Positions 1,554 to 64,000 are shown, counted from the first letter of the stretch. The stretch: DNA of 64,000 nucleotides from Amphiscolops sp. MND2022 (GCA_964187785.1 OZ076413.1:63736001-63800000), one strand, 5' to 3'. Notes: generated from the letters alone by a model not told the origin. Numbers and translations are program-made.

Positions 1554-1720
1554 GGTCAGTTAGGCAACTCAGCATCCTAGTACTATAGGCTGCCATGTAG
1601 TACGTCGTGGGTTCGAATCTGACCAAGGCCGAAATTTTTCCATTTATTCATACTGAAGCCTATTGGAAGCTTTAACGTTAAGAAATTGGTTGTGCCGTGT
1701 AATTTGGCTGCACCACGTTC
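1554..1720 (+). mobile_element. Possible tRNA-derived SINE head
   Basis: B-box GGTTCGAATC at 1610-1619. GGTCAG...CTGACC inverted flanks. No full cloverleaf is visible. Confidence 0.3.
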
Positions 1721-14331: not shown

Positions 14332-14827
14332 AACAAGACGGGAACGTCTAAAGTCGGCGCTATATCTAAGGCTCAAAAAGCGCAAAAGACTTTTTGAAAA
14401 AAAAACACTTGAAATTTTTGAATTTTTTTCTTTCAGAAAATGTCGCATAGTGCCGAAAAATGTAAAAGGGGGGACCCTTTGGGCTTTATTAACATATATT
14501 CTGTTGCAAAATATCAAGAAACTCGAAAAGGAGACTCTTTTGAGACATTAAAAAATTTTCGAAAAAAGTCGCACAATGCCGAAAAAAAATCAAAAGGGGG
14601 ACCCTTTAGTCTCGTCCGGTTTTGTAGGTTACGTTAAAATAGTAAAAAATGAAAGGGGGACCTTTTTGCACTAATTTCCGCTGACCGGACTTGGCCTAAT
14701 GGTAGTAGTTTTAGTAGTTTCGATTGTAAGAAAAGTGGCCCAATCAGAGTGAGATAGTAGTCTGACGAAAAAAAAAACTAGCCACTGTAAGAGTCGGGCA
14801 CTTTTCCCTAGAAAAGCGCCGACTAAA
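14332..14827 (-). mobile_element. Non-autonomous Helentron/DINE-1-like element (family A), copy
   Basis: Subterminal inverted repeats AGTCGGCGCT / AGCGCCGACT; internal GGGGGACCCTTT blocks; the minus-strand 3' end ends in CTTGTT as in DINE-1. Confidence 0.55.
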
Positions 14828-15899
14828 AACAAGAATGCACAACATTGACAACCCACATTACCCACGAGTTCACTGATAAAAGCCGATAACTCGATAACAT
14901 CCGATATTATGGAAAATCTACAGGATTTCTTGTCGACGTTTCCGTAAGTTGCTATTTGCAGATTATTTTGCAAATCAGGGTCTCACTGAAACCTTGATTT
15001 GATGTGTTTTTCTGAAGAAATAGCAACGAAGGCGACAGAAGACTGATTTGCTGCTATTTTTAAGCGTTTTTGAAACGTCTAGTTTCTCAGATCTGTCTTT
15101 ATTGAATAAACGTCTGATTTGATGATGATGATGAAATTCGGCCATTTGATGTTTTTAGGCCGATTACCATTTCAAACCTCGGAATCATGTGTGAGCACTC
15201 CGGATGATAAGGAACAGTTTTTATGTGCTTGATGGACGTGTCCAAATTTGGAGTGTGATGGCATGTCGCCCCGGAACTCTTAACACTAACTGGACCAGAA
15301 AATTTCCGGATTCATTCAAAAATATGCTGCTTAAACTTTAAACCGAAACATCTCTCAAATTATCATACTTTGACTGGTTTCCGCTTCACACACGAAAACG
15401 GAAGTTGATTGTTTTACACTTTAACCTGGTACACATTTTGACTGGAATTGACTGGAATGCACGATGAACACGATGCACAGTTTGACTAGAATATGGTTCG
15501 CTCTCGTTTTACGGAAAATACGCTTTACACTTGATGATAAATTCCACTTTTGCAGCATATGTATCGAAAAGTTGCATGTTTTTAAACATGCTAGGTGCAC
15601 CTTGACCCAATCTTGATACCAGTGGGATAAAGTGTAACGATCACCCAGCATCCACGTCTGAAATTTCTTTCAAGGGACTAGATTTTAACAATTTTGGTCA
15701 TATGCCGCTGATCGCTTCCGTGTCTTTAAAAAAGACCTGCCAGTTGAATTAAAGAGGCCTAGAGCGACACAGTGCGAAGAGCAGACCCACCGAACGAAGA
15801 CGGAAAAAGACTCAAATTAGACTCAAATCTGCTTATTACACCAACACGGACTTTTGTTTCGACCAGCGCTTTCTTTAGCAAGTTGCTACTAATGGTTGC

Positions 15900-20555: not shown

Positions 20556-21833
20556 CAGTAGTGTGATAAGAAAAGTGAACTCCGTATACAATTTAACGAC
20601 AGTATTATTTCAATTATCTCGCAAATAATGAAAGATACAGAAAATTGCCAGATATAAAAGCGTTTTGACATTAAACACTGAGTCTATTAATATTTGGTAC
20701 AAAATCCCTTCTTCTTTATTGCGAGTTGTAGACGTCTGGGAACACTACGGTAGAGTTTTTGAATGTAAACAGTCGGTATTTTTGAAAATTCCTGAAACGA
20801 AAACCGAATAAGCTCCTCTAAACACTTCGGATTTCTTTTAGAAACCCTTCTTTTCAAATAGCTCCAAACATTTTCGGTTATATTCAGATCTGGCGACTGT
20901 GGAGGCCAATTTTCAAGAATACTGAAACCATTTTCGTTGAGAAAAGTCAAAGTACTTACAGAAACATGGCATGGCGCGTTGTCTTGCTGGAAAATTTCTC
21001 CCAAAAACATATTCTCCATTAAATTTTCTCTCAAAATTGTTTGGTACTTACCTGAATCTAGCTTATTTTCGACTACAATGAGGTCTCTTTCCCCTGAAAA
21101 CTTTATGAAACCCCAAAACATAACTTTTTTACCACCAAATTTTTTGAAGGTAGAAATGTATTTTCGATTGAACCCTTCTCCAGGAGGTCTTCTGACGTAC
21201 TCTCGTTGTGTTGGGTTGAGTTCCATAATTGTCTCGTCCGAAAAAACGACATTTTCCCAAAATCCGTCACCTAAACCAACCATTTGCCGACACCAATTTT
21301 TTCGCTTTTGGACGTTCAAACTAGTAATGAAAGGTTTTTTGATACTTATCCTGGCCCGTAATCCATGTCGAATCAAAATTTTTCGAACTAAACTCGAAGA
21401 AATTTTCAAGAAAGGTGATACTTCTCTGGCAATTTGTGTAGAGTTAAGAAATGGGTTTCCTCTGGAAGTTTTGATGATTGTTCGTTCCGTTAATTTGTCC
21501 GATTTCCTCACTCTTCCGGGTTTTTTGGCGTTCTCCACCGTCCCATTGCGCTTCCACTTTTCAATAATTTTCCAAATTGTCGATTTGTTAATTTTAAGCC
21601 GTTTTTGAATGAAGAAAATGGTTTTATTCAGCAGATAATACTGAATAATTTTGCAGCGATTTTGCAGGCTGATGACTGGCATTTTGCAACTGAGATTTAT
21701 ATCAATAGAAAGCGCTTTAAAAGTTGAGTTTACTGTCAAATTTTTGTTTGCCTACCTCAAATACATGCGAAGTTATGTGTATTTAAAGAATGAATCATCT
21801 TAACAGGAGTTCACTTTTCTTATCACACTACTG
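20556..21833 (-). mobile_element. Complete Tc1-like DNA transposon (IS630-Tc1-mariner), 1,278 bp
   Basis: Perfect 28-bp TIRs CAGTAGTGTGATAAGAAAAGTGAACTCC (20556-20583) and its reverse complement (21806-21833). TA target duplication at 20554-20555 and 21834-21835. One uninterrupted transposase ORF. Confidence 0.97.
20687..21682 (-). CDS. Tc1-family transposase, 331 aa from ATG at 21682, DD35E
   Basis: N-terminal paired-type HTH region with GRxR linker (KPGRVRKS). Catalytic motifs VFSDET, FQQDNAPCH and WPPQSPDLNITENVW; 35 residues lie between the second D and the E. Confidence 0.95.
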   Translation of the reverse strand: MPVISLQNRCKIIQYYLLNKTIFFIQKRLKINKSTIWKIIEKWKRNGTVENAKKPGRVRKSDKLTERTIIKTSRGNPFLNSTQIAREVSPFLKISSSLVRKILIRHGLRARISIKKPFITSLNVQKRKNWCRQMVGLGDGFWENVVFSDETIMELNPTQREYVRRPPGEGFNRKYISTFKKFGGKKVMFWGFIKFSGERDLIVVENKLDSGKYQTILRENLMENMFLGEIFQQDNAPCHVSVSTLTFLNENGFSILENWPPQSPDLNITENVWSYLKRRVSKRNPKCLEELIRFSFQEFSKIPTVYIQKLYRSVPRRLQLAIKKKGFCTKY

Positions 21834-27874: not shown

Positions 27875-30800
27875 TTATTGAAACCGATACTCACTCCAAC
27901 ATTTCCGGCTATATTGCGGTCTATCAACTTGACTTATGAATTTCTCAGTAAAATATTTCTTTAGTCTCTTCTTCAGTGTATCATACGTTTGATTTCCACT
28001 TTTCATTTTATCAGGTAAAACGTTCCACAGATCTACTACTCTCTTGAACAGTCTGAGACTGTTTCTCATTTGTTCACTTCTTGTATGAGCACGATAGTAC
28101 AATTTCTTAGTTCTATCGTGACTTGTTATACTGGCGGTTTCTAAATTAAGCTGGGAAAAAGCGGGAAGAAGACTATGCTTCCATTTCCAGAAAAATTTGA
28201 TAGCGTTCATTACGAACTGATATGATACCGTGTTTTATTCTCAAAGCCTGCGCTGAATCCATTTTATATCTATTGAAACACGCTTTTACACCCCAATTCA
28301 ATTGTTTTTCTAAAGTCGAAATTAGGCTCTGAGAGATACCATTCAATAATACCGATGAATACTGGAGATGGCTGATCACAAGGGCATTTAATAGAAATAA
28401 TCGAATTTTATCTGGAAGGAAGTCGCGGACATAATAGATGGTTTTGATACTACAAGCCATTTCTCGTAAGACATTCTTCACCTCTGCTTGAAAATTGAGA
28501 TTCCTATCCAAATATACTCCAAGATATTTTACAGATTCTTTTTGTTTAATCAAATAATCCCCAACTTTTAACATAGCATTTTTTATTGAACTGTTTTTGG
28601 ATGATTTACAGAAAACAATGAACTCTGTCTTGTCAGCATTTACATTGAGACGGTGGATTGCGAAAACATCAGGAGGTTCTTTTATGCCTTTCTGCAGATA
28701 ATCAACGCCAGTTGTAATGTCTTTAGCTGCTACAAAGAGAAAAGTATCATCCGCATACTGAACCAAGTACAAAGGAGATTGAATGGAATTCTTCATGTTG
28801 CTAAGATATATATTGAAAAGTAAAGGGCCGAGTACAGTACCTTGTGGAACTCCTTGATATAAATTAATCCAATCGGATGTCGATGTTGATAATACTACTC
28901 TTTGTGTCCGTCCAATCAGGAAACTTTCTATTAAAAACACTGCTTTTTCATCGAAATGAAGTTCCTTATGTTTTTCTAGTAGAATTTCATGTGAAATAGA
29001 GTCAAAAGCCTTCGATAAATCCAGGAAAGCAGCTGTACCAATTTGATTGCAATCGATTTCTTTCCTTATTTTTTCCGTAGCATATACTAGTGCGTCAATT
29101 GCAGAAAAGTTTTTTCGGAAGCCAAATTGTACTAGGCTAAGAAGTTTGTTCTTATTTAAATATTCCATTGTTTGTTCTCTAATGACTTTCTCGAAAATTT
29201 TCGATATTGCAGCCGTTATTGATATGGGTCTATAATTAGATGGATCTTCAGTATCACCTTTTTTGAAAACCGGGCACACATCAGCTCTTTTGCATTCACT
29301 AGGGAACCTACCTTCATCCAAGAAAGCATTTATCAGAAAGCACAGCGGTTCGGCAATCGTGCTGATAGAATCTTTAAGAGCCCAAGCTGGTATTCGGACG
29401 GCCCTAACGGTTTACAAGGGTCTAGTTCTTTTAGATATTTTTTTACAAGTGTAGATGCTGATGAGTTCAAATTCGAACATCAAACTCTTGCTCATGGCAA
29501 TTTCCTTGTTACTTCTATACGGAATTTGCTTTGAACCTAAGTAGTCACCAAGTTTTGAGAAACGTTAGTTAAGTAAATTCACTATCTTATTTTGGTCAGT
29601 ATAGATGTCGCCAAAAACGTTTTTGAGTGATGAGATTTCAGTTTTGCTTTTTTTTGAATTTCTCGTATCATTGATGAAGTTCCATTTTTCTCGCTCTGCT
29701 TTCAGATTCTTGAACGTGTTGAAGTTATGGACGGAACGATTTTCATTGATTTTTTCAACGAAATTCTGTTGAATTTTATTATACGAGATATCATCTGGAT
29801 GCATGAACTGTTTCATTTTATTGTATATTTCGATGGACTTTTTTTCAACCCATGATTTTTGTATCGTTAAGAGATTCTTATCATTACGAATGAAGATTTT
29901 TTTCTTAAAGACACAATTTCTCATCGCATTTTTCAAGATGTCATTAAAAACGTAGAACATTTCTTCAGCACTCTTCTGGCGGTAGAACCTACACCAGTCA
30001 CTTTTTTGAGTCTCTTGACAAAATTCATCTCTCTTATAATTACTTTTGTCAAAAACCTCTTTGATTGTAACATTACAACGTTTTTCGATATGTAGGTTAC
30101 TTACGACGGACGTTGTGCGATGATCTATTGATTTATTTTTGGAAGAACGAAAGACACTATCTGATACGAAGGTCTCAAAATTTTCAGATTTCAAATGATC
30201 CGTAATAATGTAGTCAAGGAGTGTTCTTGATTGATTTTGTACTCTGGTAGCGTGATCTTTATTCATGACATTGAGGCCGTATGGTGTCAGAATGGTTTCC
30301 AAACATTCTCTTTCTCTTTTGTCGAAGTAATTTATATTATAGTCGCCCATGAGCACTATTGGTTTTTTCTCAGTAAAGGCATAATCGATGCTGGTTGACA
30401 GTTCCTCGAGGAAACTATTGTAATGCTTTTTTTGCGGATTATAACTAATGTTATTTAATTGCCTTGACTTCTCCGAAAGCGAGTTAGTCAATTTGCATTC
30501 TATCCATAAACTTTCAAAAATGTTTTTGCTCATTTGATTCAAATCCAGACGCTTTTTCGGCTTCAGTGACTTTGGAACTGCTAAGATCACTCCACCACCT
30601 TTCTTCTTTTCGTTTGACTTTCGGTCATATCTAAAAAACCTAAATCTATGGTTTATTTCCCAGAGTTTCTCATCATCTTCTTCAGAAAGCCATGTTTCGG
30701 TGATTCCATAGATAGTATTTTCTCCAAGGTCTTGGATTATGTCTTTGAAAGACTCCTTTTTTTTGAGGCTCTGACAGTTTATATTGCTTCTATTTTGCTT

Positions 30801-30875
30801 CGTGAAAATTTGGGTGAGTAACTCATAGATAACTTCTGGTCCTGGGTTCAGCTCAATGTCTCCAGACCTTAACAA
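27875..30875 (-). pseudogene. LINE ORF2: apurinic endonuclease + reverse transcriptase (fragmented)
   Basis: SGDIELNPGP start motif; APE motifs GITETWL, LMGDYNIN, LLDYII, SIDH; RT motifs NYRPISIT, FLDLSKAFDSI, GVPQGTVLGPLLFNIY, YADDT, YLGVYLDRNLNF. Confidence 0.92.
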
Positions 30876-31085
30876 CTTGATTTTGTTATAAGATTTTCAA
30901 CAAGTATATCGCAAGAGTCTGATAATCGTGTTCTTCTGGCGATACATGTTCTGATACTTTAACCTATTTGTTTCACGTTTCATTAAGCCATATGTTGGAG
31001 TCCCAAGAAAGATTAATAATACAAAGAACACTAAAAGCTGACGAATCATTTGTTAGAACTAGAAGCCATTTCGGATTGAACACAT

Positions 31086-32017
31086 TTAGCGGTTTAACAG
31101 TTTGCTCAGCTCATTCCATTTTAATTGTAATTCGTGATATTTGTTATTATGGGCATCGGGTTTTAGTCGTTCTCGCATGGTTATAGGTCCAGAAGAACAC
31201 GGGATTTCATTATCAGAGAGACATGACCGATAACTTTTCACGATAGTTTCCACTCCAGAGATGTTTGGGTGAACACCATCAGTATTGAGGTAATCCTTGT
31301 CTTTGAATAAAGTATTGAGGTCCAGGAAATGTAATGCTAAGTCGTCAGGAATGTCACTCAACTGATGATGGATCTTTTGCAGCTCCTTGTTAAACTTGTC
31401 CACTGAAACATTTTTATCTTTATTATAACTTGCAAGGGGGGTCAAGTTGACTACGTTGATGAAACCTGGGTTGAACTTATCGTTGACCAGGTAGATTAGT
31501 TTTTCCATATTGTTAATCATCATCTTAATGTCGGGCTTCTGTTCCTTCAGAATATCTTTGATTCCAATTGCTAAAAAGATGGAGTTGACCTTCTTTTTTC
31601 TTGTGTGAGAAACTTTTCATACAAATCAGAGATGCGAGCACCACCGTAGCCTCGAACAATAGCATCTGGTCCAATTTCTGGCTGATTCAATCTGTTTGTA
31701 ATTGAGTCACCCAAAACTAAAACGTCAATGTCTTTGTTAGGCAGTGAGAGATGGGGCTTCATTACTTTGTCTATTGTTACATTTTCTTTTGTGGGCAGAC
31801 CATTACTTATTCCAACAACGTATTCATTGCGTTTGGTAACAGCAGCATAATAATTTATCTCCGTCGGAGGAGGTTCTGTTGGATCAGTTGATTGCACTTT
31901 TGATACTAGACCAGAAACAAGGCCTTTTAAATATTCAATTCGATTGGAGAAATCTTGATACAATTTATACTTAACTTGGTCCGGTAACGACAAAAACTCT
32001 TCTCTATTCAACGTCAT
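31086..32017 (-). pseudogene. LINE ORF1 with SGNH/GDSL esterase domain (frameshifted)
   Basis: Block I VLVLGDSIT, block II RGYGGARI, block V DGVHPN. Split over ORFs 31571-32017 and 31086-31523. Confidence 0.8.
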
Positions 32018-33892
32018 GGCTTCATTAGTTCAATGTCTATTTTGTAATTCCCATACTTATTGATAAGAATAATAAATAGGAACGGTATCACCGGGATTTT
32101 TCAGTCGTGAAGAGAGATGAGAAGAGAGTTGAGCACGCCCAGAGCCAGAAACTTCCACTCCGATGGTGAAACCAGAGCAAACACAATAACTTTCACTCGG
32201 ATGGGAAGACTTCACAACCTTCAATGCCGGCCACTAAAACCCTCCATGGAGGTTGCCCAAATCGATGCTTGCCGGACTTTCAGAAATTAGCTGAAAGAGA
32301 TATGCCTCCCGGTGTGGAATGGACGACCTATTTAATAAGTTTGATTACGTAATAACTGATCGTAATATTACGTAATATTACGTTATAACTGATCATTAAA
32401 CTGATTGATTGACAAAAGCACGAGACGAGGGGAGTTTTCAGTTGCTAACCTCCTGTTGAATTTTCAGAATGTTTCAAGAAGAAGTTCTCGTCAACAAGTG
32501 GAAAGAGATGTGTTTATGTTTGATTCCCTGGCTTGTACAACATCGAAAGTAAGGAAATGTAGTTTGGGTTATACTCGAAACATGATCGATCGGTTTTTAT
32601 GGATGATTGACAAGAGACTTCAGGAAGGAATGTCGAAGGAATACCTGAAGGGATACCGATGAGACTTGAAAACCACCTTTTCACTTTTTGTAATCAAAAA
32701 ACGCAGAATTTAAAGTCAATATTTCAGTTCAAAAAATAGTCAAAGATGTGCACCTGAGACTCGCAAACCATCTTTTCCCTAACTGGATACATCATATACC
32801 CCAAATTCTTGGAATTATTTTCTCGAAACACTTTCTGGGGGAAAAGTCGCATTATGCCGAAAAACCAGAACCTTTGGGCTCGCAACGAAATCTTTCAAAA
32901 TCGAAAAAACTTTCATAATCAAAACTACGGAAGCGCCGACTAAAAGAATCAGCTTTCACATGTAAAAATTAAAGCTGGTCAAAAGAAAATCTTTCGTTCA
33001 ATCTGTTGCGTAGTTAATCTACGTGGATGATCATATTTCGGGACCTATATGGCACCAATAAAACCCACTTAGTCAATTCATAAAACTCATGCAATTATCA
33101 CTCGGAATAACAGACGACAACAAGCCCAATTGACATACAGTTTATTCCATGTTTTTGAAAAAACCTTCAGTTTCAGAAGCAAAAAGTGAATAGGAAACTA
33201 AGCCAGTCAAGCACACACTGTGCCCTGTTCACGCCGCTTGCTTGGCCCCGCCACTTGGCCTGATGGCTAGCGAGCGTTGCGGGTGAGCAGGAGTATGTTT
33301 GCGGGTGTGAATACCTTGCGAAGCCAGAGCGTCCCCATTGTGTTTTTCGGGGCACAATTTCTCACTGTTTGACTTTTTAGCGATTTCATAATTTCAGCGA
33401 AGGATCCACTCTTCGGTTTATTTGGTCTTTTCACTTAGAAGAAACTTGTTTTTGTTGCTAAGAACGTCTCCAATTTTGAGCTTTCTGGCTTTGTGCGACG
33501 TTTTTGTGTTTTTTTGGGGCACAGTGGGACTTTTTCTTGATTTAATTTCAAGTCTCCTTTTGGGTTCTTTTGGTTCTCTTCAATTAAAAAAACATGTTGT
33601 TGTAGCCAAAAACGCTTGAGTTTTTTGGGTACTGTGCGACTTTTTTTGGAACAAAGAAGACTTTTTGTACTTGAAGAACTCTCTTCTCATAATTTCCTCA
33701 CTGTGTGAGATTCTACAAGTTTTCTGAAATCCACCAGTGACCGGATGGCATGAGAGAAAGTGCTTTTCCAGCTTTAGGCGGAGCGCCATTTTTAGACGGT
33801 TACGTCTTTCTCCGAATAAGTCCTAAATTCTGCCAGTTAAATCCAGCCGATGTCATGGCCCGCTGAAGGCTCAAAAAGCGCTGAGTCTCTGA

Positions 33893-39825: not shown

Positions 39826-39857
39826 TGGCACAGTCTGCAATTTGAACAGAAGAAATT

Positions 39858-52654: not shown

Positions 52655-53377
52655 TTAGTTTTCAAAAAGTATAAAATTAATCTCAGTATCGGTTAGTTTC
52701 ATTCTATATTTAAGGTCAACAATATCTTTGTATTCATCTTTTTTTAAGGAAAACACGATATCTCCTCGCGTTGAATAGTCTAAGTCCGATAAATAATAAA
52801 CACCATCTGATGTTTGTATTTCTTTTCCGTATTTTTCCAACAAGTATTCATCACTAAAATATAAGTACTCATTAAAGATTTGGTCTATATTTTCAAATGA
52901 ATCAAACAATCCTTTGTTGTATAGTAATTGAATGGTATCTTTGACTGTTTGATTTTTACATTTTTGCAAGTCCGAGATAAGGTTTCTCTCAAAATGATTA
53001 CGTAAAATGGTTTGTTGTTCTTCCACTAACTTGGCAGCATCCAAAATTATTTCTTTTTTCTTTTCTAAAATTTTATTTTTAACATCTTTTGATAAGTATT
53101 TCAGGTTGATTTTCAAGTCTTCTATATTTTTATTTATGTGTAAGAATAACTTTGCATTGACTACTACCTTGGTTTCACCATCATCAAAATTAATTTCTTG
53201 TACACGCAATGCGCCTTCGGTATTTTGTAGGTTATCAGTCATACCATTTATGGTGCTTTGCATATCAATAAGTTTTATATTAAATAATTTGATTTGTGAT
53301 TCGAATTCTTTTTCAAGATTCTCAATCTTATCTTTTTGTAGGCTCTCGACACTATAACCAATTTTATGAATTGACAT
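52655..53377 (-). CDS. Hypothetical coiled-coil Polinton protein, 240 aa
   Basis: Long intact ORF; no catalytic motif recognised; contains the TEGALR motif. Confidence 0.6.
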   Translation of the reverse strand: MSIHKIGYSVESLQKDKIENLEKEFESQIKLFNIKLIDMQSTINGMTDNLQNTEGALRVQEINFDDGETKVVVNAKLFLHINKNIEDLKINLKYLSKDVKNKILEKKKEIILDAAKLVEEQQTILRNHFERNLISDLQKCKNQTVKDTIQLLYNKGLFDSFENIDQIFNEYLYFSDEYLLEKYGKEIQTSDGVYYLSDLDYSTRGDIVFSLKKDEYKDIVDLKYRMKLTDTEINFILFEN

Positions 53378-53630
53378 TATTTATTTAAATATAATTACTC
53401 ATAACGATGGAAAATATTCATACTTTCTAACGTTTTGTTGTTAGATTTAAAATTGTATATATTTCTTAAAAGTTCTTGTTCATAATATTTTCCTTCTATT
53501 TGTTCGTTGTTTTCATCTACTAAACCATACGTAACTGGGTTAGTTGGATTAATTTTATGTATTTTAAAAAGTTCTCTATTCCAATTTGTTGTATAACCTT
53601 TACTATATAAATTGCGTTTATCAGGAACTC

Positions 53631-54279
53631 TTACACTTGGAATTTGGGTTGTTTACGCAAAGCGCCTTCGGTGTTTTTAAACTTATTACGCAGAGCGCCT
53701 TCGGTATTGTGAGGTATTAGTTGATTGTTAGTTGACATTTCAAAAGGTGTCATCTTGGTAGTTCCATGGACTCGATTATTATATTTTTCCGTAGCAGCAT
53801 CTAGATGATTCAACCAGTTACCTTTTCCTTCAATGTACATTGGTTCTTTGATTAAGTCCAGAAGTGTTCTATTGAATCGTTCAACAAAGACAGCTTTTAA
53901 ATCTGAATTAGTTGAATAAATTTGAATTTCATTTTGTTTAAGAAAATCCAAAAACGTTTTATTATAAAACTCTTTACCTCTATCTGACCATATTTTATCA
54001 GGTTTTCTTTTTGCTTTTTCAATAAGACTTTTAAATGCAGTTGTTGTATTTCTTTCCTGATTTATCTTTAAGAGGAATTGCCCAAGCCTATTTAGTATGA
54101 TTATCATTTATTGTGAAAATAAACTTGTAGTTTTTGTTGTATTTTGCTAACCTAGACCTGTCTATCAGATCAATACTCCAACACTCATCTTTATAGTGAG
54201 TTTGTATTTGAATTCTTTGAAACTTTTTGATTACAGGAGAGAATAATTCTTCAGTAATTTCTTTCTTCTTTTCTTTCAT
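53631..54279 (-). pseudogene. Polinton retroviral-type (rve) integrase, frameshifted
   Basis: WSIDLID, IWSDRGKEFYN and KAVFVERFNRTL supply the D-D-E triad; split over ORFs 54088-54279 and 53631-54107. Confidence 0.92.
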
Positions 54280-54439
54280 TTATTTATTGTTTAGAATTTT
54301 TTCTTGTTAATGAATATAACAGTTGAAAGTCGTATTTTTATCACTGAGGGTGATTCCTAATGACTATTAGTTATTCTTAGTTATTCTTAGTGATCCTTAG
54401 TAAATCTTAATGATTTTTAGTGATTTTTTTACTAGATAA

Positions 54440-54655
54440 ATGAAGTGTATAATTTGTGGAAAAAGTAATGAAAAATCTGTCTGCTCCGATTGTGAGAATA
54501 AAAAAAGATGTAAAGAATGTAATACATTGAAAACAGATTTTTACAAATTTAAAAATGATAAATTGTATAGTACATGCATAGAATGTTTCAATAAAAAAGT
54601 AAAATGTGAATTCTGTGATAAAAAATTCAATAAAACCTATTTACAAAACATTTAA
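54440..54655 (+). CDS. Small Cys-rich zinc-finger ORF, probably a frameshifted N-terminus of the downstream ATPase gene
   Basis: Multiple CxxC pairs (CIIC, CSDC, CKEC, CIEC, CEFC). Confidence 0.5.
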   Translation: MKCIICGKSNEKSVCSDCENKKRCKECNTLKTDFYKFKNDKLYSTCIECFNKKVKCEFCDKKFNKTYLQNI

Positions 54656-54698
54656 AAAGATGTATTATTAATCATGATAATATTAATTATACAAATAA

Positions 54699-55424
54699 TA
54701 CCGTAATACCGAAGGTGTTTCGCGTATTATAAATCATAATGATGAAAATCATGAAAATAATATTATAAATAATAATGATGAAAATAATAATGATGAAAAT
54801 AATACCGGAGGCCAGCAAAGATGTAATAGAACATTAATAGTTGGCCCATCATTTTGTGGTGAGACTCATTTGCTAATAAATAAATTACAATTAATTCGAT
54901 TATATGATAAAGAAAAAGAAATACATATAATAACTAGATCTCCAAATCAAAATGAAGATTTTGAATTAGAAGACACCGAAGGCGCTTTGCGTATAGTAAT
55001 AGAAGAATATTTAGAAGATAAAGGTATACAAGATTTTCAAAATTGTTGTGTTGTATTTGATGATATGTTGGATAGTAATCAAAAACTAATAGATCCATTT
55101 TTCACTAGAGGAAGACATAATGATTTAGATGTTCATTATTTAGCACAATCATATTTCGATTTGCCTAAACGCACCATACGCAATAATAGTAATATCATAA
55201 TTTTATTTCAACAAACATTGAAAGATGTTGAACATATATACAGAGATATTGCTGGTTTTGATATGTCTTATGATGAATTCAAAGGTTTGTGCAGAGAGGC
55301 ATGGAAAAAATACAACTATTTATTATTAAACAGGTTAGAAGATAAAAATGGGAGTAGGTATAAAATATGTATTGAATCTAATCCAGAGTATAAAATCTTT
55401 AATCCACGAACGGAAACTTTCTAA
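54699..55424 (+). pseudogene. A32/FtsK-like genome packaging ATPase
   Basis: In-frame upstream LIVGPSFCGETH (Walker A with Lys read as Glu); Walker B CCVVFDDML; FTRGRHN arginine motif; LAQSYFDLPK. Confidence 0.88.
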
Positions 55425-55430
55425 ACAAAA

Positions 55431-55736
55431 TTAATCTTTTGAACACATAATTTCTTCTTTTAGGTTCTTCATATCTTTGTCTAGTTTTTGTCCTAGTTGT
55501 TCAAAGCAGTTCCAAATCATTTCTGATAGACTTTCCAACTTTAATCTAAGTTGAAAATTTTCTTTTCTCAATTCTTGAATTTCTTTTTTCAATTCATTGA
55601 ATTGATTATCTTTAGATGGATTATCCATTTCATTGGATTGATTATGGTTTGATTTATTTTCAAAATTTTTTTTCTCAATTCTTGAATTTCGTTTTTCAAT
55701 CCATTGGATTGATAATCCATTAATATTTATATACAT
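55431..55736 (-). CDS. Small coiled-coil/leucine-zipper-like Polinton ORF
   Basis: ELKKEIQELRKENFQLRLKLESL heptads. Confidence 0.45.
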   Translation of the reverse strand: MYININGLSIQWIEKRNSRIEKKNFENKSNHNQSNEMDNPSKDNQFNELKKEIQELRKENFQLRLKLESLSEMIWNCFEQLGQKLDKDMKNLKEEIMCSKD

Positions 55737-57145
55737 ATTTAAATTTAATCAAAATGCTGAAACAATATTTTGGTGTTGATTTGTAGTAATACCATTACAG
55801 TGCATCTGCAAGCTAAATCGCTACAGACACATTTCTGTGCCTGTAGGCCCTCCGATTCCGCAGACATGTCTTAAAGCGTGCAAAATTGGCAATTTAGCAC
55901 TGATTTTGCGGAATCCACGCCACGAAAATCGGCGTTTTTCGGAATCCGAGGGCATGGGTTAATACGTTAGCCGGTTTCATTTTGCGGAAACTGGGACCAA
56001 AAATATGCCGACAAATGCCGACAAGATGCCGCCAAATTCGTGTCTTGGATTCCACAAAGTGCATTACAACCAATCAGATGGCTGCAAATTTTAGCGTCTT
56101 AGTTTCCACTTACATTTAAATTAGCTGAAATCAAATTTAATAAGCCGGAGAGTAAATACAAAGTCAATTACCACAAACAATTTGAAATCAATGTCTCCCT
56201 TTCCGTAAAACTGTCGGCTTCTCTTCCTTTCATCCATACTATACTATACTACTATACTATGGTACTACAATTATACCAACTGCATTTGAGTTTGAAAAAA
56301 TGAAATTTGAAAATGAATTTGAAAAAACGAAAAAGGCAAATTTCTTTCAACACTTTACTAAAGTGCAAAATATTTATACTGATTGTCTTTAGTGATATAC
56401 AATAGTGAAATACATTTATACCAACTGGAATCAATTATTTTAAAATGAAACTTTCATTTTAAAAATTAGTGCAAGTCGGGGGAATTTGGTTCCAATCGTG
56501 GGTCGAATCGTAAAGCTGTTTAAATGAAAAAAATGAAAATTTGATTGAAATAGTCAATTAGAATGCAATTGAAAAGATTCAGGTTACTTGTACTATACTT
56601 AACTATAAAGTTCACTATACTATACTGGATTATTTCTATACTATAGTGATACACAAGAGTGAAATAGTACATTTATACTGAAATAAATTTTAATTTATAC
56701 TGGAAAATGAAAAATTTATTTGAATAATCAGAGTGGAGAAAAGGGGAGATTTTGGTTCCAATCGTGGGTCGAATCTGAGCAAAATTAATCAAAATGATAT
56801 CGATTTGAACGATATTTGAAACAACTATAGATTTTCTGTTTATTGATCGTTTTGGGTGTGAAAAGGAAAGCATTCAATAATGTATTATGCTTCAGGTTTA
56901 GAGGAAAAAACTCTACTGAATTTTATCAAGATTCGAGGCGAAGAATAAACAGCAAAAGATTAAACTTTTTCGTATTCGAATATTTTTTTCGATTGTTTTC
57001 TAGAACATTCTCGAATTTTTACGGTCATCGAGAAACTGCTTTTTATTTGCTTTTAAACTTATTGCTTGTCAACAATTAGATATTAGAACAGATATGATTG
57101 TTATTGCCTTATCGGTCATGGCTTGAAAGTTCACAGTTTCAACCG

Positions 57146-57325
57146 TGGCTCACCAGCGTCGCGTATCAGCGGCTCGTATCAAAATCTTTACTGTTACAAT
57201 CGTGAGTAATTTCCTTGCTAATCAGCGGCGCGTATCAGCAACTCGTACCAAACTGATTACTGTTCCAACTGTGGGCGATTCCTATTGGCTAATCAGCGGC
57301 TCGTATCAGCGGCGCGTATCACAGC
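57146..57325 (+). promoter_or_regulatory. CpG-rich 13-bp repeat array upstream of the ZnF-JmjC gene
   Basis: Six CAGCGGC(G/T)CGTAT-like units in three tandem pairs, ~200-390 bp upstream of the ATG. Confidence 0.4.
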
Positions 57326-57530
57326 AACTGACCGATTGCTAACTGACCGGCAGTTTTCATTGTCAAACTTGTTTTCCTACCGTTCGGACTGTTAACTGAA
57401 TAACAAGCCAGAATCTCCCATTGAATTTCTCTTTGATTCTCTCAACAACTCAAAGTTCTGCAGACATCCAACAGCCAGCAGCCGATACTACCCTCAGCCA
57501 ATCAACGGATATAACCCGAAGCCAATCATA

Positions 57531-60500
57531 ATGGTAAGTTGACTTATTCGTTTTCGGAAATAAATTTTTGGTTGAAAAATTGTCGATTAGGTACCAAATA
57601 ACATAAGAGCAAATAGCATCAAAACAAAATTAGGTTCAAATATCTTAAAAATGAAACTTTCTCGTGAACAATTGTATTTTTATGTTTTGTCAAACTCATT
57701 TCATTTTTGTTATTTGAAACTAATTTCGTTTTTATGTTATTTGCTCTTAGGTTATTTGGGAATTCACCAAATTGTCTTTGTATTGATTTTGATTATGGAT
57801 TTTATGGAATAAACAAAAGTATTCAGAGCGTCAAAATTAAAGTTAGCTATTCCTTGCGTCTTGAGTTCTACTTGTTTCAATTTTAATCCCAAATTCCAAA
57901 AAACTGTTTTTGGATTTTATCAGGAAATTATCAGTTTAAAATCAACTGCCCCTTTGGGTCGTTAGAAAAGCCCCCCACCTGTAATTGATTTTACAATTCA
58001 GAAGCAGATTCTGGTAAGTTGTAAATATTAATATTGTTTTTTTGGAAAAGTTTGTTAATATTTTTTTAAAAGGTAAGTTGTAAAACTTTTATTTAATAAT
58101 AACTGGGGGACTTAAATTGATGGGGGGATGAGCCGGAAAGATCCAAACTTTCTCGTAAACAATTTTGGCTTCGTTATTTGAACTAATTCAAATTTCAAGT
58201 TATTTGCTCTTGTTATTTTGGAATTCACATTTTCAAGTTGTTACAGCCGAAATCGAAGAAAACAGCTGCTTCTGAGCAAAGTACTTCTGAGCAAGCTCCC
58301 GGACCCAGCGGACCCAGTAGATCCAGCACTTCGCAGAACATTAGATCCCGCATGGACTCATCTGACTCATCATCAGAACTCTTCCTTGGTAAGTCGTTAA
58401 TTCCTGCGTTACTTTTTCTTGACTATCAGTGAAAAAGGTCAAAAACTATCAAACTGCTGAAACGGGTAAATTCAACTGCGAAGGTGAAAAATGTTTGAAG
58501 TTTTGATGAACGTTTTTTTACTTTATCTGGATTTATCTGTATTGAAATTTCGAGGCTGTATGAACAGGGGTGTTCAAAAAATAATTTTTGAATATATTCA
58601 CATTTTTTGTATATATTTTCATCTTTGTTTTATTACTCAGGTCATCTCTGCACAGTCGGTGCTTGCGACCATTATGCCCCCACTCGAGAAGCCCTTGCTG
58701 TTCACGCCCGCACTTGCCCAGGTTTGCCAGAAAACCGAAAACGACAACTCTGTGACGAATTTCGAGATACAACTCCGCCACCTAAAAAACGTAAGACTTC
58801 CATTTACTCGTTCTTTTACTCGTTTTGACAATTCCAATTAACAAGCGACAACCTCCATTTTTTTGTTATTTAAAATGGAATGATAAATAATTTGACAAAT
58901 CAAACATCACGTGGATCAAAATATCTTGTATACCATTTATGAAAGTTTTGAGCAATCTAAATGAAACCTATCATTTTTGTAACTCGTGGAAAACAATCTG
59001 ATTTTGGTATGTATATTGTATGTATAGGTTGGATTTTTATTTGACTTCATCTCGTATAATTCAAAAGGCTATGTTTAGGTTTCCCGTGTCCGAATTGCGA
59101 CTACGTTGCTGGAAGAAAATGGCACTTAACCCGTCATCTTCCCGGATGCAAAAGTGTCAGCAAGCAGGAACAAGTTGCCCAGAATTTGACGTGCGAGAAA
59201 TGTGGTCAGATTTTCACGACCAAAAAAAGTAAAGAGCGCCATCAAAGAAGAGCCAAATATTGCACGAAACAACAAGAAAAGATTGCTGCTGGAGAAGAAG
59301 TCAGAATGTACCAATACCGTTAGTGTTAAGATTGTTTCCAGAATTTTTTTCCGTGTTTTGAAATATTTTACGGTCTTGAACCGATTATCGTATGCAATAG
59401 AAAAAGAAGGACAATGTTTTTTTGATGTGAAAGGAAAGGTCTAAAAACACAAATTTTCGGAAAGGATTTTGCTTCCTTCAATCATGGGTCATACCATGAA
59501 AGCATTCATAAAATCTTTGTGAAGATTTTTGGTTCCAATCATGGGTCATACCATGAATGAAATTCATGAGAAAAAAGTTTGCCAAAATTTTTGCCAGTGG
59601 ACATTCATTTGATAAATTGTCTTTGAAATTACAGAAGCTGCGAGAGGAAAAAGAAGAAGCCGTCACTTCTGCATTTCGTGTGGGACCTCATTCGGGTACG
59701 GCTACAGCCTGAGGAACCACATCGCGAGATCAGTCAAATGTCAAATTGCCCAACCACCGATGCCACTTGATTTGACATTCAATTCTGGGACTCCAGCGGC
59801 CCCATTTGGCACCCAAGAACACTTCGCATTTTGCGAAAACGTGCCTCTGGAATGTCAATTTTCCTACGCTGAGTGGCAGGGTCCCCATGACAATCAAACC
59901 GAACACCTTGGTCACCTTCTTCGACATGGTGTCCCCTTGATTTGGAGAAATGGAGCCAAGCACTGCGCAGGACTGAAAATCCCAAACTTCTCCGCGAAAA
60001 AAGGCTTCGTCGCGGAGATCAAACGGCTTCTGCGACCGGTCAACCTTGCTGAACCTGATGCTCCAATTGAAGTCAAGTCAGCCAGAATCGGAGAGGTAAA
60101 AAACGCTTTTACTCGTTTGAACCATGTTTAGCATTTAGTAAAAACCGAATTTAGTTGTTCCAAAACACAAACCATGGGTATACCCCTTCAAGTGATGTTC
60201 TGCAATGTATTAGGATTTGTATTTGGTTTCCACGCCGTGTGTTTAAAGATATGGTCTTGTTTTCCGCATAGCATTCTTTGAGTAATTCAATTCAAACTTA
60301 AAAGCGTGGAAACTAGGACATTCATGGTGACGCGCAATAATGTGTATACCCCTTTGAGTGAAAGTTCGCAATGTATTAGGATTTGTATCTGGTTTCCACG
60401 CCATGTGTTTAAAGATATGGTCTTGCTTTCCGCATTGCATTCTTTGAGCAAGTCAAATTATATTGAAAATCCGTGGAAACTGGGACAGTTATGTCGAGTT

Positions 60501-62383
60501 CGTTTTGGTACCAATCCAGGTCCAATCTACCTGTGACAAGTACACTGTTGATAACAAGAATTAGAACCTTGCCTAGCATCATTTATTAAATTTTTTTGCA
60601 GACACGAAACATGACGTATGACGAGTTTTTCGTGGAGCTGGCCAACTGTCATCCAGGCAGTCGGTATTACCCTCTAAACGTCATCGATGTCAGGACACTC
60701 CCCAAGGCCATATACACAGTACCCAAGATGGTGGCTGACAACTCCATCAACCATTTGGCCGACAGGGAGATCGGGAAGTCGAGAACCGAGCCTTACTCTT
60801 GTTCTACTTCCTATTATGTCCTGGTCACTCAAGATTCTGCGCACACGACGTGGCATCAGGATTATTCTTCGACGTCTGTGTTTTACACAGTTCTAACTGG
60901 AGAGAAGATTTTCTTCTTAGTGAAACCGTCGAAGAACAATCTCAGCATTTTTGAAAGATGGTCGAATTCTGAGAACGACACTACGTAAGTAACAAAACTT
61001 AACTAATACACCAACTTTATTGTCTTCAAGTACACTGTTCTATTTTCAAAAACAAACACTTATGCTTTTTGACTAACATTTTTTGGTGATGGAAAACAAC
61101 AAGCAAGCATTTGACGTCTCTTTTCAAATATTTAAACTTTTTTCTAGTTTACTTCTATTGATGTCAAAAAATTAGAAAAGCAACTTCGATGTACTTTCAG
61201 GCCAACATTCTTCGGGAACATCGACCAGCTGGAAGAGGGATGTTTGCGGTTGCATGTCACAGCTGGAGATGTTCTAGTCATGCCCGCAAATTTCCTCCAC
61301 TTTGTTCTTACGAAAGGCAATGCCATTTCGTTGGGAACAAACTTCCTGGCGTTCGGGCACCTGCCAATGATAAGACACTCAATCATCGTCGAGTTCCCGA
61401 GAAGATCCGATGACAAGTTCCCTGATCTTCCAGAGATGTTGGTACTTCTGATGTACCGTATTGCCGAAAAGCTGTGCCCTCGACTCTGTCGACGCCTGGT
61501 GTCGATGTACAGCACAGTGCAATCACTATACAATGAACACGCCGCCCGTGAAGTAAGATTGTTAAGCCTTCAGTCTTGTTAGGTCACAAAACTTCAATTT
61601 TCCATTTTTCCATTTTCAAACATCTCCATTTTGGTTCCAATCGAGGGTCATTTTCTAGTTCAAAAAGTTAGGTGAAGTAAGATTGTTAAGCCTTCAGTTT
61701 TGTTTGGTAACAAAACTTCTATTTTCCATTTTCAATCATTTCCATTTTGGTTCCAATCGAGGGTCATTTTCTAGTTCAAAAACTTATGGTTCTGAACAAG
61801 TCTTGCTTTTTTCAATTGGTCATTCTCTACATTCATGTCTAACTGATATACATGCAAGTAAAACACAACTGAAAGAAATTTTGTGCTTCTAAGTCAATAA
61901 ACAAGAACTATACTAAAAATGTTTCGGATTTTTCAATTGAAAATTTGCTCTCCAGGTTGAAAGTTTGATTTTTACGTTTTACAGGTGCTACCCGATTTCA
62001 GTCCTGAAAGACTTCACATCGTATTGGGCAAAAAAAGAGCTTCAGTGACACTGCGTGAGACACCAAGCAGCAGTCGCAGTTATTTGAGCGAGCATCCCGA
62101 AAAGAATACTGACCCCAGTAAGGCTCTTACTGTTCCAGAGCATGTGCCTATCGCTGTTGACCCCTACACGAAAACCTACGAGGAAGTAATGACGACAACG
62201 GATCTACTAGAACTCGAGTCAAAACCCGCAATGATGGTTACCCATGTTAAAGGCAAGGGAAGAACTGTCTTGCCGGCAAAGATGGTAGATCCATCTTTGC
62301 ACCCGAAACGCTGTCCTCTTGCTGCTGCCATTACGGGAATCCGCTCAATCCCCCTTGAACTAGATATTTTAGATTTAGATTAA
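57531..62383 (+). CDS. Multi-exon gene: four CCHC zinc fingers + KDM2/KDM7-type JmjC dioxygenase (putative histone demethylase), ~713 aa
   Basis: Exons 57531-57533, 58002-58013, 58247-58388, 58641-58790, 59079-59318, 59635-60095, 60602-60984, 61201-61552, 61985-62383. All introns are GT-AG, phases are compatible, and the total is 2142 nt without an internal stop. JmjC motifs AHTTWHQDYSSTSVFYTVLTGEKIFFLVKP and GDVLVMPANFLHFVLT...LGTNFL. Confidence 0.85.
60181..60487. repeat. ~166-bp tandem repeat in intron 6, also present at ~62625-62812
   Basis: GGAAAC.AGGACATT.ATGGT.ACGCGCAATAATGTGTATACCCCTT.GAGTGAAAGTTCGCAATGTATT... is shared between the two sites. Confidence 0.85.
61550..61785. repeat. 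~120-bp tandem duplication that copies the exon-8 splice donor
   Basis: GTGAAGTAAGATTGTTAAGCCTTCAGT...TTGGTTCCAATCGAGGGTCATTTTCTAGTTCAAAA occurs twice. Confidence 0.8.
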
Positions 62384-63012
62384 ACTGTAGATTCAGATTT
62401 AGATTTTCAGTATCATACAAATAAATGACAAAACTTACAATCTGTTTTATTTAGTGACGAGCGCAAGAAGTTTAATTGGAAAACGAATTGAAAAAAAATA
62501 CTCAATTGTTCAAAACATGCTTTGAAACGTTTGGACGTCTACTGCAATTATTTCCAAGAATATGCAAGAATAATAGGAGAAAAATCAGGAGTATACCTCA
62601 ACAGTGAATTTCCGCTAGGTAAAAACGCAATGGAAACCAGGACATTTATGGTAACGCGCAATAATGTGTATACCCCTTCGAGTGAAAGTTCGCAATGTAT
62701 TAAGATTTGTATTTGGTTTCCACGCCATGTGTTTAGAGATATGGTCTTGTTTTCCGCATTGCATTCTTTGAGTAAGTCAATTCAAACTTGAAACCGTGGA
62801 AACTAGGACATTTGTGGCAATGCGCATTCAACCAAAACAGACGAAAGTTTCCCGAAACGGAGCCCAATATTGTGTGCTTTTTGGCACCAATTTATATGTA
62901 AAACTAGTTTCGTAGGAGCATCACATTAAACCTAATTAAAATACTCATTTTTGAAGAATTTATTGAATAGTTTCAAGTTCGGGTAACATATGAATTAGAA
63001 GAGAACAGTAAA

Positions 63013-63999
63013 TCAAAACGAAAGTTGTTTAAAAGTGCCATCACGGTATCTCTTGAGAGCGACAATCGCAGATACACCTTCACCCAGTGTTTTTCCACTG
63101 CATTGATCCAAGAACAAAGGTCTTTTGTCGTTGACACGATTTTCAACAAGTTTGGATCCGGGCTGAAGAATGTATGGCTCCGGGTCAACCAGCATTTTTT
63201 TCTCGTCAACTTCAGCTAAAAAATCGATAATCAAGAATTTGAAACCCCCAGCTGCGAATCGTTTTGCTAATTTGGAATATTGTGATGGTTCATTTCCACC
63301 CTCCCGTGTTGCTGATGACCCTCTTTTCCTTGGTTTCTTCATGTCGTTAATTTCCTCTGTGGAACCGGTACCTAAGATTAAGTCTTTTTCGTCCTTGACG
63401 AGAACAAAACAATTGGGGAGCTGTGAATGGGTGCTCATCAACACGTCAGCTTGTTCATTTTCTAGAACAGTTCCTCCCATATTGATGATCAATTGCTTCA
63501 CTAGGTCATGTGTTAGAGTATGTTTTTTCCAAGTACCCAAGCGACCAAGCAGACAAAATCTTAATCCACTTAAAGGATTTTCTTGACATCCAATGGCGAT
63601 AGTTGTTAATGGTGGTTCTATGCGGCAAATATCAAGGTACTCAGGTCCCGGAACGTCAATGCCCATCACTTTTGTTGCACTATGAAGTATACTCATTACG
63701 CTGTTTGTGGTACTTTTCGAAACTGTCTGATAGATCTTTCTGTTTCCAGTCATATTATGGTCATCGAAGTAGACCTCTGTTGTTGCGTCTTGTTCAGGTT
63801 CCATGATATTCCTGGAAGTTGGTTCAGCGTCCGACCCTTTGTCTTCAACTTCAACTGCGAATCTTAAAAATTTCAAGAAAGAAAAGGACGACTCGAGGAA
63901 TAGTGGATCCTTGTGATAAATCTTACCCCCTCCGCGCATTGTTTTTGTCTGAAAGCCACGATTAGCGTGGTGGTTCGATTTTTCAAGACCTTCACACAA
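63013..63999 (-). CDS. C-terminal part of a BRCT-domain protein (5' end outside the window); possible DDE-transposase C-terminus upstream of the BRCT
   Basis: 328-codon open frame to the window edge. BRCT-like PLSGLRFCLLGRLG...LVKQLIINMGGTV...FLIIDFL...DPEPYIL. The N-terminal EGLEKSNH segment resembles an ExxExxN catalytic helix. Confidence 0.65.
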   Translation of the reverse strand: MCEGLEKSNHHANRGFQTKTMRGGGKIYHKDPLFLESSFSFLKFLRFAVEVEDKGSDAEPTSRNIMEPEQDATTEVYFDDHNMTGNRKIYQTVSKSTTNSVMSILHSATKVMGIDVPGPEYLDICRIEPPLTTIAIGCQENPLSGLRFCLLGRLGTWKKHTLTHDLVKQLIINMGGTVLENEQADVLMSTHSQLPNCFVLVKDEKDLILGTGSTEEINDMKKPRKRGSSATREGGNEPSQYSKLAKRFAAGGFKFLIIDFLAEVDEKKMLVDPEPYILQPGSKLVENRVNDKRPLFLDQCSGKTLGEGVSAIVALKRYRDGTFKQLSF

Positions 64000-64000
64000 A

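Follow-up and report, generated by a model that had tools for sequence, protein, structure and literature searches.

We analysed a stretch of 64,000 nucleotides from Amphiscolops sp. MND2022 (GCA_964187785.1, OZ076413.1:63736001-63800000), hereafter called the window, which carries on its forward strand, at positions 57531-62383, a gene encoding four zinc fingers followed by a JmjC domain. This gene starts 1.7 kb inside a 17,832-bp element, which is a cut-and-paste DNA transposon that has been active very recently. On balance, we lean towards the view that the zinc-finger/JmjC protein is a transposon-encoded anti-silencing demethylase, which its fingers would target to the element. A preliminary description of the gene had proposed a lineage-specific demethylase, retargeted by zinc fingers to DNA or to partner proteins. 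The view that it is a single host demethylase of this kind has to be given up, as the gene sits in a multi-copy, recently mobile 17.8-kb transposon bounded by terminal inverted repeats (TIRs) and kept across deep divergence.

The window corresponds to contig ctg185867_106x_l of the ENA assembly ERZ25074608. The ends of the element were defined by comparing its copies. The open reading frame (ORF) corresponding to exon 6 was found in identical form on four contigs, and these four loci are 99.93-99.99% identical from exactly base 55793 onwards, with unrelated left flanks: a Polinton-like element in the window, a BEL/Pao element, another retroelement, and anonymous ORFs. At the right end, identity also stops at one sharp boundary in four loci. 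The count of genomic copies suggested in the preliminary description gave at least six (99.93-100% identity, on six contigs), with the same ends and different, unrelated flanks. The length of the element was taken from copy B. The termini are CATTACAG...CTGTAATG, i.e. 5'-CA..TG-3', and the first base of the element is fixed by an empty site together with a 2-bp target-site duplication (TSD). At the locus L015, the flank is duplicated in tandem: one duplicate is uninterrupted (...agcaTGtggcc...), and the other is interrupted by the element with TG on both sides. This pair is an empty site with a 2-bp TSD. The other duplications observed are GA/GA for copy A and CC/CC for the diverged relative L003. 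A TA duplication with CATTAATG as target was rejected, as the empty site showed the ends to be those given above. Repeats of GCGGAA or TCGGAA are clustered below both termini (Table 1), and TTGCGGAA occurs five times in the two 1.7-kb ends and not once in the 14.4-kb interior. The coding sequence of the JmjC gene is intact in four copies, with a single amino-acid difference (T603P) between the window copy and the three others.

The eight exons of the gene, separated by introns that are all of the GT-AG type, are spliced into a single reading frame of 709 amino acids, and the window contains no runs of N and no sign of human DNA. The 713 amino acids and eight introns (nine exons) of the preliminary description are obtained once a micro-exon of 12 nt is included. 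The intact GT-AG gene stands, whereas exon 1 and the micro-exon have no support except that the ATG followed by GT is kept in L001, a close paralog to which intron 1, the home of the micro-exon, aligns poorly. Between L001 and the window copy, exons are 90-95% identical and introns 57-88%. The gene is real and not a chance concatenation, because exon 6 matches the structure of PHF8 in the PDB (E-value of 7e-12), exon 4 matches the Pfam family zf-C2H2 (30.9 bits, for a cut-off of 25.2), and exon boundaries, fingers 2-4 and catalytic residues are kept in paralogs with saturated synonymous sites. Two of the introns also hold repeats. In intron 7 (61541-61800), a tandem duplication of about 125 bp, seen by eye, starts at the donor of exon 7 (GTGAAGTAAGATTG..., again near 61672), and the second donor context is a possible alternative splice donor. 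Intron 5 holds two tandem repeats (60170-60325 and 60345-60487; about 150 bp, about 80-92% identity) resembling miniature inverted-repeat transposable elements; the same repeat is found downstream of the JmjC gene (62631-62830), elsewhere in the element (loci L010 and L016) and many times in L002.

Besides PHF8, exon 6 matches the structures of KDM7A (1e-10), PHF2 (5e-9), KDM2A (4e-7) and ceKDM7A of C. elegans (1e-5), and exon 7 matches those of ceKDM7A (1.2e-3) and KDM2A (6e-3), with the distal histidine aligned. The residues contacting iron and 2-oxoglutarate align residue for residue with those of PHF8, and the distal histidine with that of ceKDM7A and KDM2A (Table 1). The catalytic apparatus of the JmjC domain thus appears, from its sequence, to be as intact as the preliminary description had stated. 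In fragments of the family at 30-40% identity, the Fe-binding histidine is invariant, and the threonine, aspartate and tyrosine are at least 90% conserved. Pfam models were scored on the separate exon pieces of the gene, and zf-C2H2 was the one family to exceed its threshold. On the JmjC pieces, this gave Cupin_8 (E-value of 0.002) and JmjC_2 (0.21), without a match to the JmjC model, PF02373; a paralog, P0025, scored 17.9 bits with the JmjC model, for a cut-off of 24. The Jumonji helical domain (JHD, PF17811) had no match on exons 7 or 8, where annotated relatives score 80-120 bits, and past the JmjC core the alignment with ceKDM7A covers the first helices only. The preliminary description saw no PHD, CXXC, F-box or leucine-rich repeat (LRR) domain; in agreement with this, there is no Pfam match for PHD on exons 2-5 and none for CXXC, F-box or LRR on the exon pieces. 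Exon 8 has no domain recognisable by Pfam.

The four announced fingers, each ending in a cysteine, are all present. They all exhibit the classical C-x2-4-C-x12-H spacing, and their fourth ligand is a cysteine instead of a histidine, as in every paralog examined. This terminal cysteine is kept in all subfamilies and in a second metagenome (ERZ27286575). In addition to the zf-C2H2 match, exon 4 matches zf-H2C2_5 (E-value of 4e-4), and finger 4 gives a weak zf-C2H2 match. The label "CCHC" used for these fingers in the preliminary description is misleading, as spacing and Pfam match are those of a classical C2H2 finger in which the last histidine is replaced by cysteine; we therefore regard them as C2HC variants of the C2H2 finger. 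The retroviral CCHC knuckle (C-x2-C-x4-H-x4-C) was rejected on account of the C-x2/4-C-x12-H-x3/6-C spacing and of the lack of a zf-CCHC match. A degenerate PHD was rejected as well, since the spacing is that of C2H2 fingers, and the profile search on the exon pieces returned no PHD match and zf-C2H2 above cut-off instead. The best PDB matches of exon 4 are the N-terminal fingers of R2 retrotransposon proteins (1.3e-4) and CTCF (1.8e-4). In R2 (PDB codes 9nl2, 9nl3 and 9dou), the match extends over 72 residues of fingers 2 and 3, as C-x2-C-x12-H-x3-C and then a second finger; an R2 origin of the fingers is a lead only, the R2 score being no better than that of CTCF. Fingers 2 and 3 are both kept in L003, and finger 4 in L001, L002 and L003. 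Finger 1 was seen in the youngest subfamily alone; L001 has lost it by a deletion, and no counterpart was found in L003. Next to one copy of the element (L015, from 20442 onwards) lies an ORF of 901 amino acids with a weak match to zf-H2C2_5, the Pfam family found for finger 2 as well; this ORF may encode a protein of a further mobile element, with fingers of a similar kind.

The relatives of the JmjC domain were searched with exon 6 by a HMMER scan against 1.84 billion representative proteins, which gave 717 matches at E-values up to 1e-3, 26 of them at or below 1e-10. The close matches are without exception short ORFs the size of an exon, on ENA or Logan contigs that lack annotation. Among named proteins, the nearest are PHF8/KDM7A-like sequences from a crinoid and a soft coral, at about 38% identity, and from a spider, at about 30%. 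Each of the three combines a JmjC with a JHD, and those of the crinoid and the soft coral also carry an N-terminal PHD. Among the best 150 of the 717 matches, no long protein has C2H2-type fingers, apart from ORFs of the same family. The architecture is thus unusual, as had been claimed: no annotated protein among the best relatives has fingers N-terminal to a JmjC of the KDM2/7 kind. In a quick maximum-likelihood tree (126 rows, 145 columns, midpoint-rooted), all long PHD-bearing proteins form one clade, with a support of 98 in the Shimodaira-Hasegawa-like approximate likelihood ratio test (SH-aLRT), from which the window sequence is excluded. Together with about 65 short fragments, the latter falls outside this clade, on long unresolved branches. 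The designation "KDM2/7-type" is therefore justified with regard to sequence likeness to the JmjC of KDM2/7 (JHDM1) proteins, and not with regard to clade membership.

The JmjC gene has been kept through the divergence of the transposon family. The gene order, JmjC (+), transposase (-), a gene of about 430 amino acids and SET (+), is kept in L002 (about 60% amino-acid identity), L003 (about 70%) and L004 (about 30%). L003 is a diverged 10.8-kb relative with its own matching pair of TIRs, which has lost the transposase and retained JmjC and SET. With regard to the JmjC exons, the nonsynonymous divergence (dN) is 0.22 against L003 and 0.32 against L002, with saturated synonymous divergence (dS) in both cases; the ratio omega is about 0.05 for L003. 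Against L001, a decayed copy with frameshifts and without finger 1, omega is about 0.5. L002 and L003 share with the window copy the acceptor and donor sites of exons 4-8 and their intron phases, and a member of the family in ERZ27286575 has two C2HC fingers upstream of the JmjC. The JmjC gene is a core component of the element and not recent cargo, and it has been retained under purifying selection as the family diversified. Three distant paralogs (about 24% identity) lie in tandem at L007 (2382-3377, 5330-6451 and 8001-9122). Each of these ORFs has one C2HC finger, followed by acidic repeats and the N-terminal half of a JmjC; no homolog of the transposase was found within the 12-kb L007 locus. 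This branch of the family may have been domesticated or amplified in tandem.

Three further genes belong to the element. Downstream of the JmjC gene and convergent with it lies an intronless ORF of 1012 amino acids that gave no sequence match in Pfam or the PDB, whether searched by itself or as a profile, and whose homologs are unnamed ENA or Logan proteins, in clusters of up to 128 members. An AlphaFold model (AF2) of this protein, built from 24 homologs, has a predicted local distance difference test score (pLDDT) of 69.6, a predicted template modelling score (pTM) of 0.62, and the strand and helix order of an RNase-H-like fold. In a Foldseek search against the PDB, the top 47 matches are all RAG1, HzTransib of Helicoverpa or BbRAGL of amphioxus (best E-value of 2e-6, template modelling score up to 0.51), with Hermes and the P element far behind. 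D310/D314, D394 and E474 are conserved, and D394, H467, E474 and D476 are invariant or nearly so. The model thus predicts a DDE transposase of the RAG1/Transib fold. Transposons of the CACTA/EnSpm-Mirage-Chapaev-Transib (CMCT) clade have 5'-CA..TG-3' termini and TSDs of 2-5 bp (Kojima, PMC12730594); the element has such termini and a TSD of 2 bp. Residues 825-890 or so of the transposase look BRCT-like by eye and were modelled as a small alpha/beta domain, without a profile match.

The SET ORF (352 amino acids; L016:11813-12871, +) lies beyond the window and is kept in L003. It matches Pfam SET above cut-off (1.5e-10), exhibits the NHS and FDY motifs, and has SETD8 as best PDB match (2e-5); it is predicted to encode a methyltransferase like SETD8/KMT5A. 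The gene of about 430 amino acids (ORF242 and ORF200; L010:16552-17965, -) is split in the young family by a short intron, and in L003 (8602-9894, -) it is uninterrupted. It has no Pfam or PDB match, and its AF2 model, with a pLDDT of 32, was discarded. By eye only, its N-terminus resembles a Tudor or chromo barrel.

Table 1 Features of the transposon and of the zinc-finger/JmjC gene, with positions counted from the first base of the window.
Feature	Position	Strand	Remarks
Element, left 8.2 kb	55793-64000		Window stops within the element; contig stops 1.3 kb further on
Left TIR	55793-55814	+	CATTACAGTGCATCTGCAAGCT; perfect 22-bp inverse match at the right end of the element
Subterminal GCGGAA/TCGGAA cluster	55856-55990		Element positions 69, 116, 147 and 192; mirror cluster in the last 320 bp
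Exon 1	57531-57533	+	Start codon only, then GTAAGT; weakly supported; ATG followed by GT kept in one close paralog, L001
Optional micro-exon, 12 nt	58002-58013	+	AAGCAGATTCTG, preceded by AG and followed by GTAAGT; unsupported
Exon 2	58247-58388	+	N-terminus rich in Ser/Thr
Exon 3	58641-58790	+	Finger 1 and basic PPPKKR stretch; largely deleted in L001; no Pfam match
Finger 1	58649-58717	+	C52-C74, C-x4-C-x12-H-x3-C; exon 3
Exon 4	59079-59318	+	Fingers 2 and 3
Finger 2	59087-59149	+	C102-C122, C-x2-C-x12-H-x3-C; exon 4
Finger 3	59192-59263	+	C137-C160, C-x2-C-x12-H-x6-C; exon 4
Exon 5	59635-60095	+	Finger 4, linker, beginning of the JmjC region
Finger 4	59670-59741	+	C191-C214, C-x2-C-x12-H-x6-C; exon 5
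Exon 6	60602-60984	+	JmjC core, N-terminal half (T414, H417, D419, Y427, K434)
T414	60845-60847	+	2-Oxoglutarate contact; aligned to PHF8 T244
H417	60854-60856	+	Fe ligand of WHQD; aligned to PHF8 H247
D419	60860-60862	+	Fe ligand of WHQD; aligned to PHF8 D249
Y427	60884-60886	+	2-Oxoglutarate contact; aligned to PHF8 Y257
K434	60905-60907	+	Lys of GEKIF, 2-oxoglutarate contact; aligned to PHF8 K264
Exon 7	61201-61552	+	JmjC core, C-terminal half with H493; beginning of the helical region
H493	61298-61300	+	Distal Fe ligand (NFLHFV); aligned to the distal His of ceKDM7A/KDM2A
Exon 8	61985-62383	+	C-terminal tail and stop codon
Transposase-like ORF, C-terminal 328 codons	63013-64000	-	Full 1012-aa ORF read in L010:12403-15441 (-)

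Based on these results, the favoured role of the protein can be outlined as follows. The JmjC protein would be an Fe(II)/2-oxoglutarate-dependent lysine demethylase related to PHF8/KDM7, brought to DNA by the array of C2H2-type (C2HC) fingers, which would replace the PHD reader. Its most plausible target would be the element's own sequences, for instance the subterminal GCGGAA repeats, the binding to which is conjectural. At the element, it would erase repressive methylation such as H3K9me2, H3K27me2 or H4K20me1, and this removal would keep the element transcribable and mobile. More tentatively, large transposons of the RAG1/Transib fold could encode a whole chromatin toolkit, comprising a finger-targeted KDM7-like demethylase and a SET methyltransferase, which would reverse heterochromatin silencing in cis.

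Several observations weigh against the favoured role or against parts of the evidence for it. Scored on one exon piece at a time, the Pfam JmjC and JHD models remain below threshold. In the quick maximum-likelihood tree, which has few columns, the JmjC is excluded from the supported clade of canonical KDM7/PHF8-like proteins, and its substrate can therefore not be read from PHF8. C2HC variants of classical fingers, such as those of the FOG type, can bind protein, so that the fingers need not target DNA, and their binding to the subterminal repeats is purely conjectural. H4K20me1 is a mark on which both PHF8-type erasers and SETD8 act, and a PHF8-like eraser and a SETD8-like writer in one element would oppose each other if both had kept their specificities. 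With regard to the transposon, the canonical C(2)C and H(3-4)H motifs of the CMCT clade are not seen in the transposase, in which C462-x4-H467-x4-C472 is conserved instead, and the TSD of copy B is mismatched (TC/TA). Decayed copies exist: L001 has frameshifts, L015 an internal deletion, and L014 an indel. Finally, exon 1 consists of the ATG alone.

It seems to us unlikely, though worth weighing, that the protein is an accessory transposition factor, with fingers that bind the ends of the element and a JmjC whose substrate is the transposase, a repair or chromatin protein, or chromatin at the target site, instead of a JmjC that counters silencing. Such a factor would suit the subterminal repeat clusters at both ends, and TnpA of En/Spm binds subterminal repeats. 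It would also suit the status of the JmjC gene as a conserved core component adjoining the transposase, and the position of the JmjC outside the canonical histone demethylase clade; JmjC enzymes include protein hydroxylases. However, each of the closest relatives with a solved structure is a histone lysine demethylase, and the residues contacting 2-oxoglutarate and iron are those of PHF8. Moreover, the non-autonomous L003 keeps JmjC and SET without a transposase, which fits a role in chromatin at least as well.

The selection, synteny, TIR and TSD, and empty-site evidence disfavours the three other explanations. It is rather improbable that a host zinc-finger/JmjC gene was captured as a passenger and is carried without benefit to the element. 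The gene has introns as a host gene would, and DNA transposons of many superfamilies capture host genes (PMC13317346). Nevertheless, subfamilies with as little as about 30% amino-acid identity keep the linkage, dN/dS lies far below 1 in the comparisons with saturated dS, and conservation extends to catalytic residues, fingers and splice sites; neutral cargo would have suffered the decay seen in the L001 copy. That the gene is a host demethylase of one lineage, with the repeats being segmental duplications of the host locus, is very improbable: a multi-exon, intact gene of unusual architecture would agree with it, and the L007 tandem paralogs, with no transposase within 12 kb, could be domesticated, but the sharp identical ends, the TIRs, the 2-bp duplications, the empty site and the RAG1/Transib-fold ORF inside contradict it for the window locus. 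A gene-model artefact or a pseudogene, i.e. a chance concatenation or a dead copy, is hardly credible despite the arbitrary choice of exon 1 and micro-exon and the Pfam JmjC score below threshold on exon pieces, given that exons are 90-95% and introns 57-88% identical to L001, that splice sites are conserved at saturated dS, and that four copies are intact.

The surroundings of the transposon in the window are rich in other mobile elements. It is inserted at the right edge of a block of low GC content (46000-55792; 26-29%) that is dense in intronless ORFs. This block comprises a Pfam double-jelly-roll capsid-like domain (50782-51411, -; 1.7e-12), a weak match to endonuclease VII (47923-49452, +), a polymerase-B-like motif, YMDTDS (near 49956, +), an rve-like ORF (53634-54107, -) and a P-loop ATPase-like ORF (54699-55421, +); it looks like a Polinton/Maverick-type element. 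At L015, the tandem duplication mentioned above covers about 2.1 kb of a Polinton-like flank (1669-4807 and 14591-15667), one duplicate being empty and the other carrying an internally deleted element. Polinton-like DNA thus received both the L015 insertion and that of the window, a hint of either a preference for such targets or a nesting of repeat-rich regions. Elsewhere in the window, a Tc1/mariner transposase ORF is found at 20687-21739 (-; DDE_3 at 6e-15 and HTH_Tnp_Tc3_2 at 3e-11), and a non-LTR (long terminal repeat) retrotransposon with a CR1/L2-like layout at 28173-32029 (-), with a GDSL esterase-like ORF1 (31089-31616), an APE-like endonuclease (29565-30875) and a reverse transcriptase (28173-29321; 3e-35). 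An A-rich (AT skew of about 0.3) LTR-retrotransposon-like gag-pol region extends over 39846-45100 (+); its gag has a Pfam match (39858-40526), and its reverse transcriptase, RNase H and integrase-like stretches were seen by eye only. The gene structure and the repeats, which are BEL/Pao, Polinton, Tc1/mariner, Helitron and CR1-like, would suit an invertebrate animal, and a thymidine-kinase exon flanks the copy L014. Neither an Rfam scan nor a tRNA scan of the window returned a match, and the other window ORFs showed no host-gene domains.

Among known systems, PHF8, KDM7A and PHF2 (JHDM1; with ceKDM7A) are the best relatives of the JmjC core among both solved and annotated proteins, sharing the T, HxD, Y, K and distal His residues with the window protein. 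In contrast to PHF8/KDM7 proteins, the latter has no N-terminal PHD and no Pfam JHD match and is encoded by a transposon; it exhibits WHQD where most canonical KDM7/PHF8 relatives exhibit FH(I/V)D. The JmjC of KDM2A/B can be aligned as well, including the strand of the distal His (4e-7 and 6e-3), more weakly than that of PHF8/KDM7, and KDM2A/B differ by their CXXC, PHD, F-box and LRR domains. REF6 and ELF6 of plants and Rph1 and Gis1 of yeast are host KDM4-like demethylases with JmjN, JmjC and C-terminal C2H2 fingers, and REF6 is directed to DNA by its zinc fingers. The likeness is that of a JmjC demethylase directed by classical fingers, whereas the JmjC of the window protein is KDM7-like, and its fingers are N-terminal, C2HC and transposon-borne. 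The element itself resembles Transib/RAG1/ProtoRAG and CACTA-Mirage-Chapaev elements by its predicted fold and its CA..TG termini, with a 2-bp TSD as in Mirage and PlavakaA/B. It differs from them by a TSD of 2 bp instead of the 5 bp of Transib, by the C-x4-H-x4-C before the catalytic E, and by its 17.8 kb and four genes.

Hosts silence transposons by repressive histone and DNA methylation. To our knowledge, counter-measures of transposons are known from few systems, namely VANC of Arabidopsis, the TET/JBP genes carried by fungal transposons and the SET genes carried by oomycete transposons. Fungal cut-and-paste transposons, including lineages of the CMCT clade, encode TET/JBP Fe/2-oxoglutarate dioxygenases, with escape from silencing as proposed role (Kojima 2025, PMC12730594). 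They resemble the window element by an Fe/2-oxoglutarate-dependent eraser of an epigenetic mark and, in the CMCT lineages, by 5'-CA..TG-3' termini and TSDs of 2-5 bp; however, the TET/JBP enzymes act on 5-methylcytosine in DNA and belong to fungal hosts, whereas the enzyme of the window element is like a JmjC histone demethylase, has fingers and belongs to an animal-like eukaryote. HarbingerS and MuDR transposons of Phytophthora encode SET (cited in PMC12730594), and VANC of the Arabidopsis VANDAL transposons is a sequence-specific anti-silencing protein without a catalytic domain (PMC5735166, PMC10398659). The likeness lies in chromatin modifiers or anti-silencing proteins encoded by transposons, as the window element also carries a SET gene; the difference is that no JmjC is reported for HarbingerS, MuDR or VANC. 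Our literature searches found no transposon-encoded JmjC, which is weak evidence, the searchable literature being incomplete.

The element is, according to its predicted fold, a divergent, very recently active relative of Transib and RAG1, and its intact copies and empty site make it experimentally tractable. If the proposed role is correct, its JmjC protein would be the first histone demethylase encoded by a transposon. It would parallel, at the level of histones, the fungal TET/JBP transposons and plant VANC, and it would be a natural example of a programmable "finger-demethylase" fusion. In an animal-like genome, the arms race between hosts and transposons would then extend to enzymes that erase histone marks directly.

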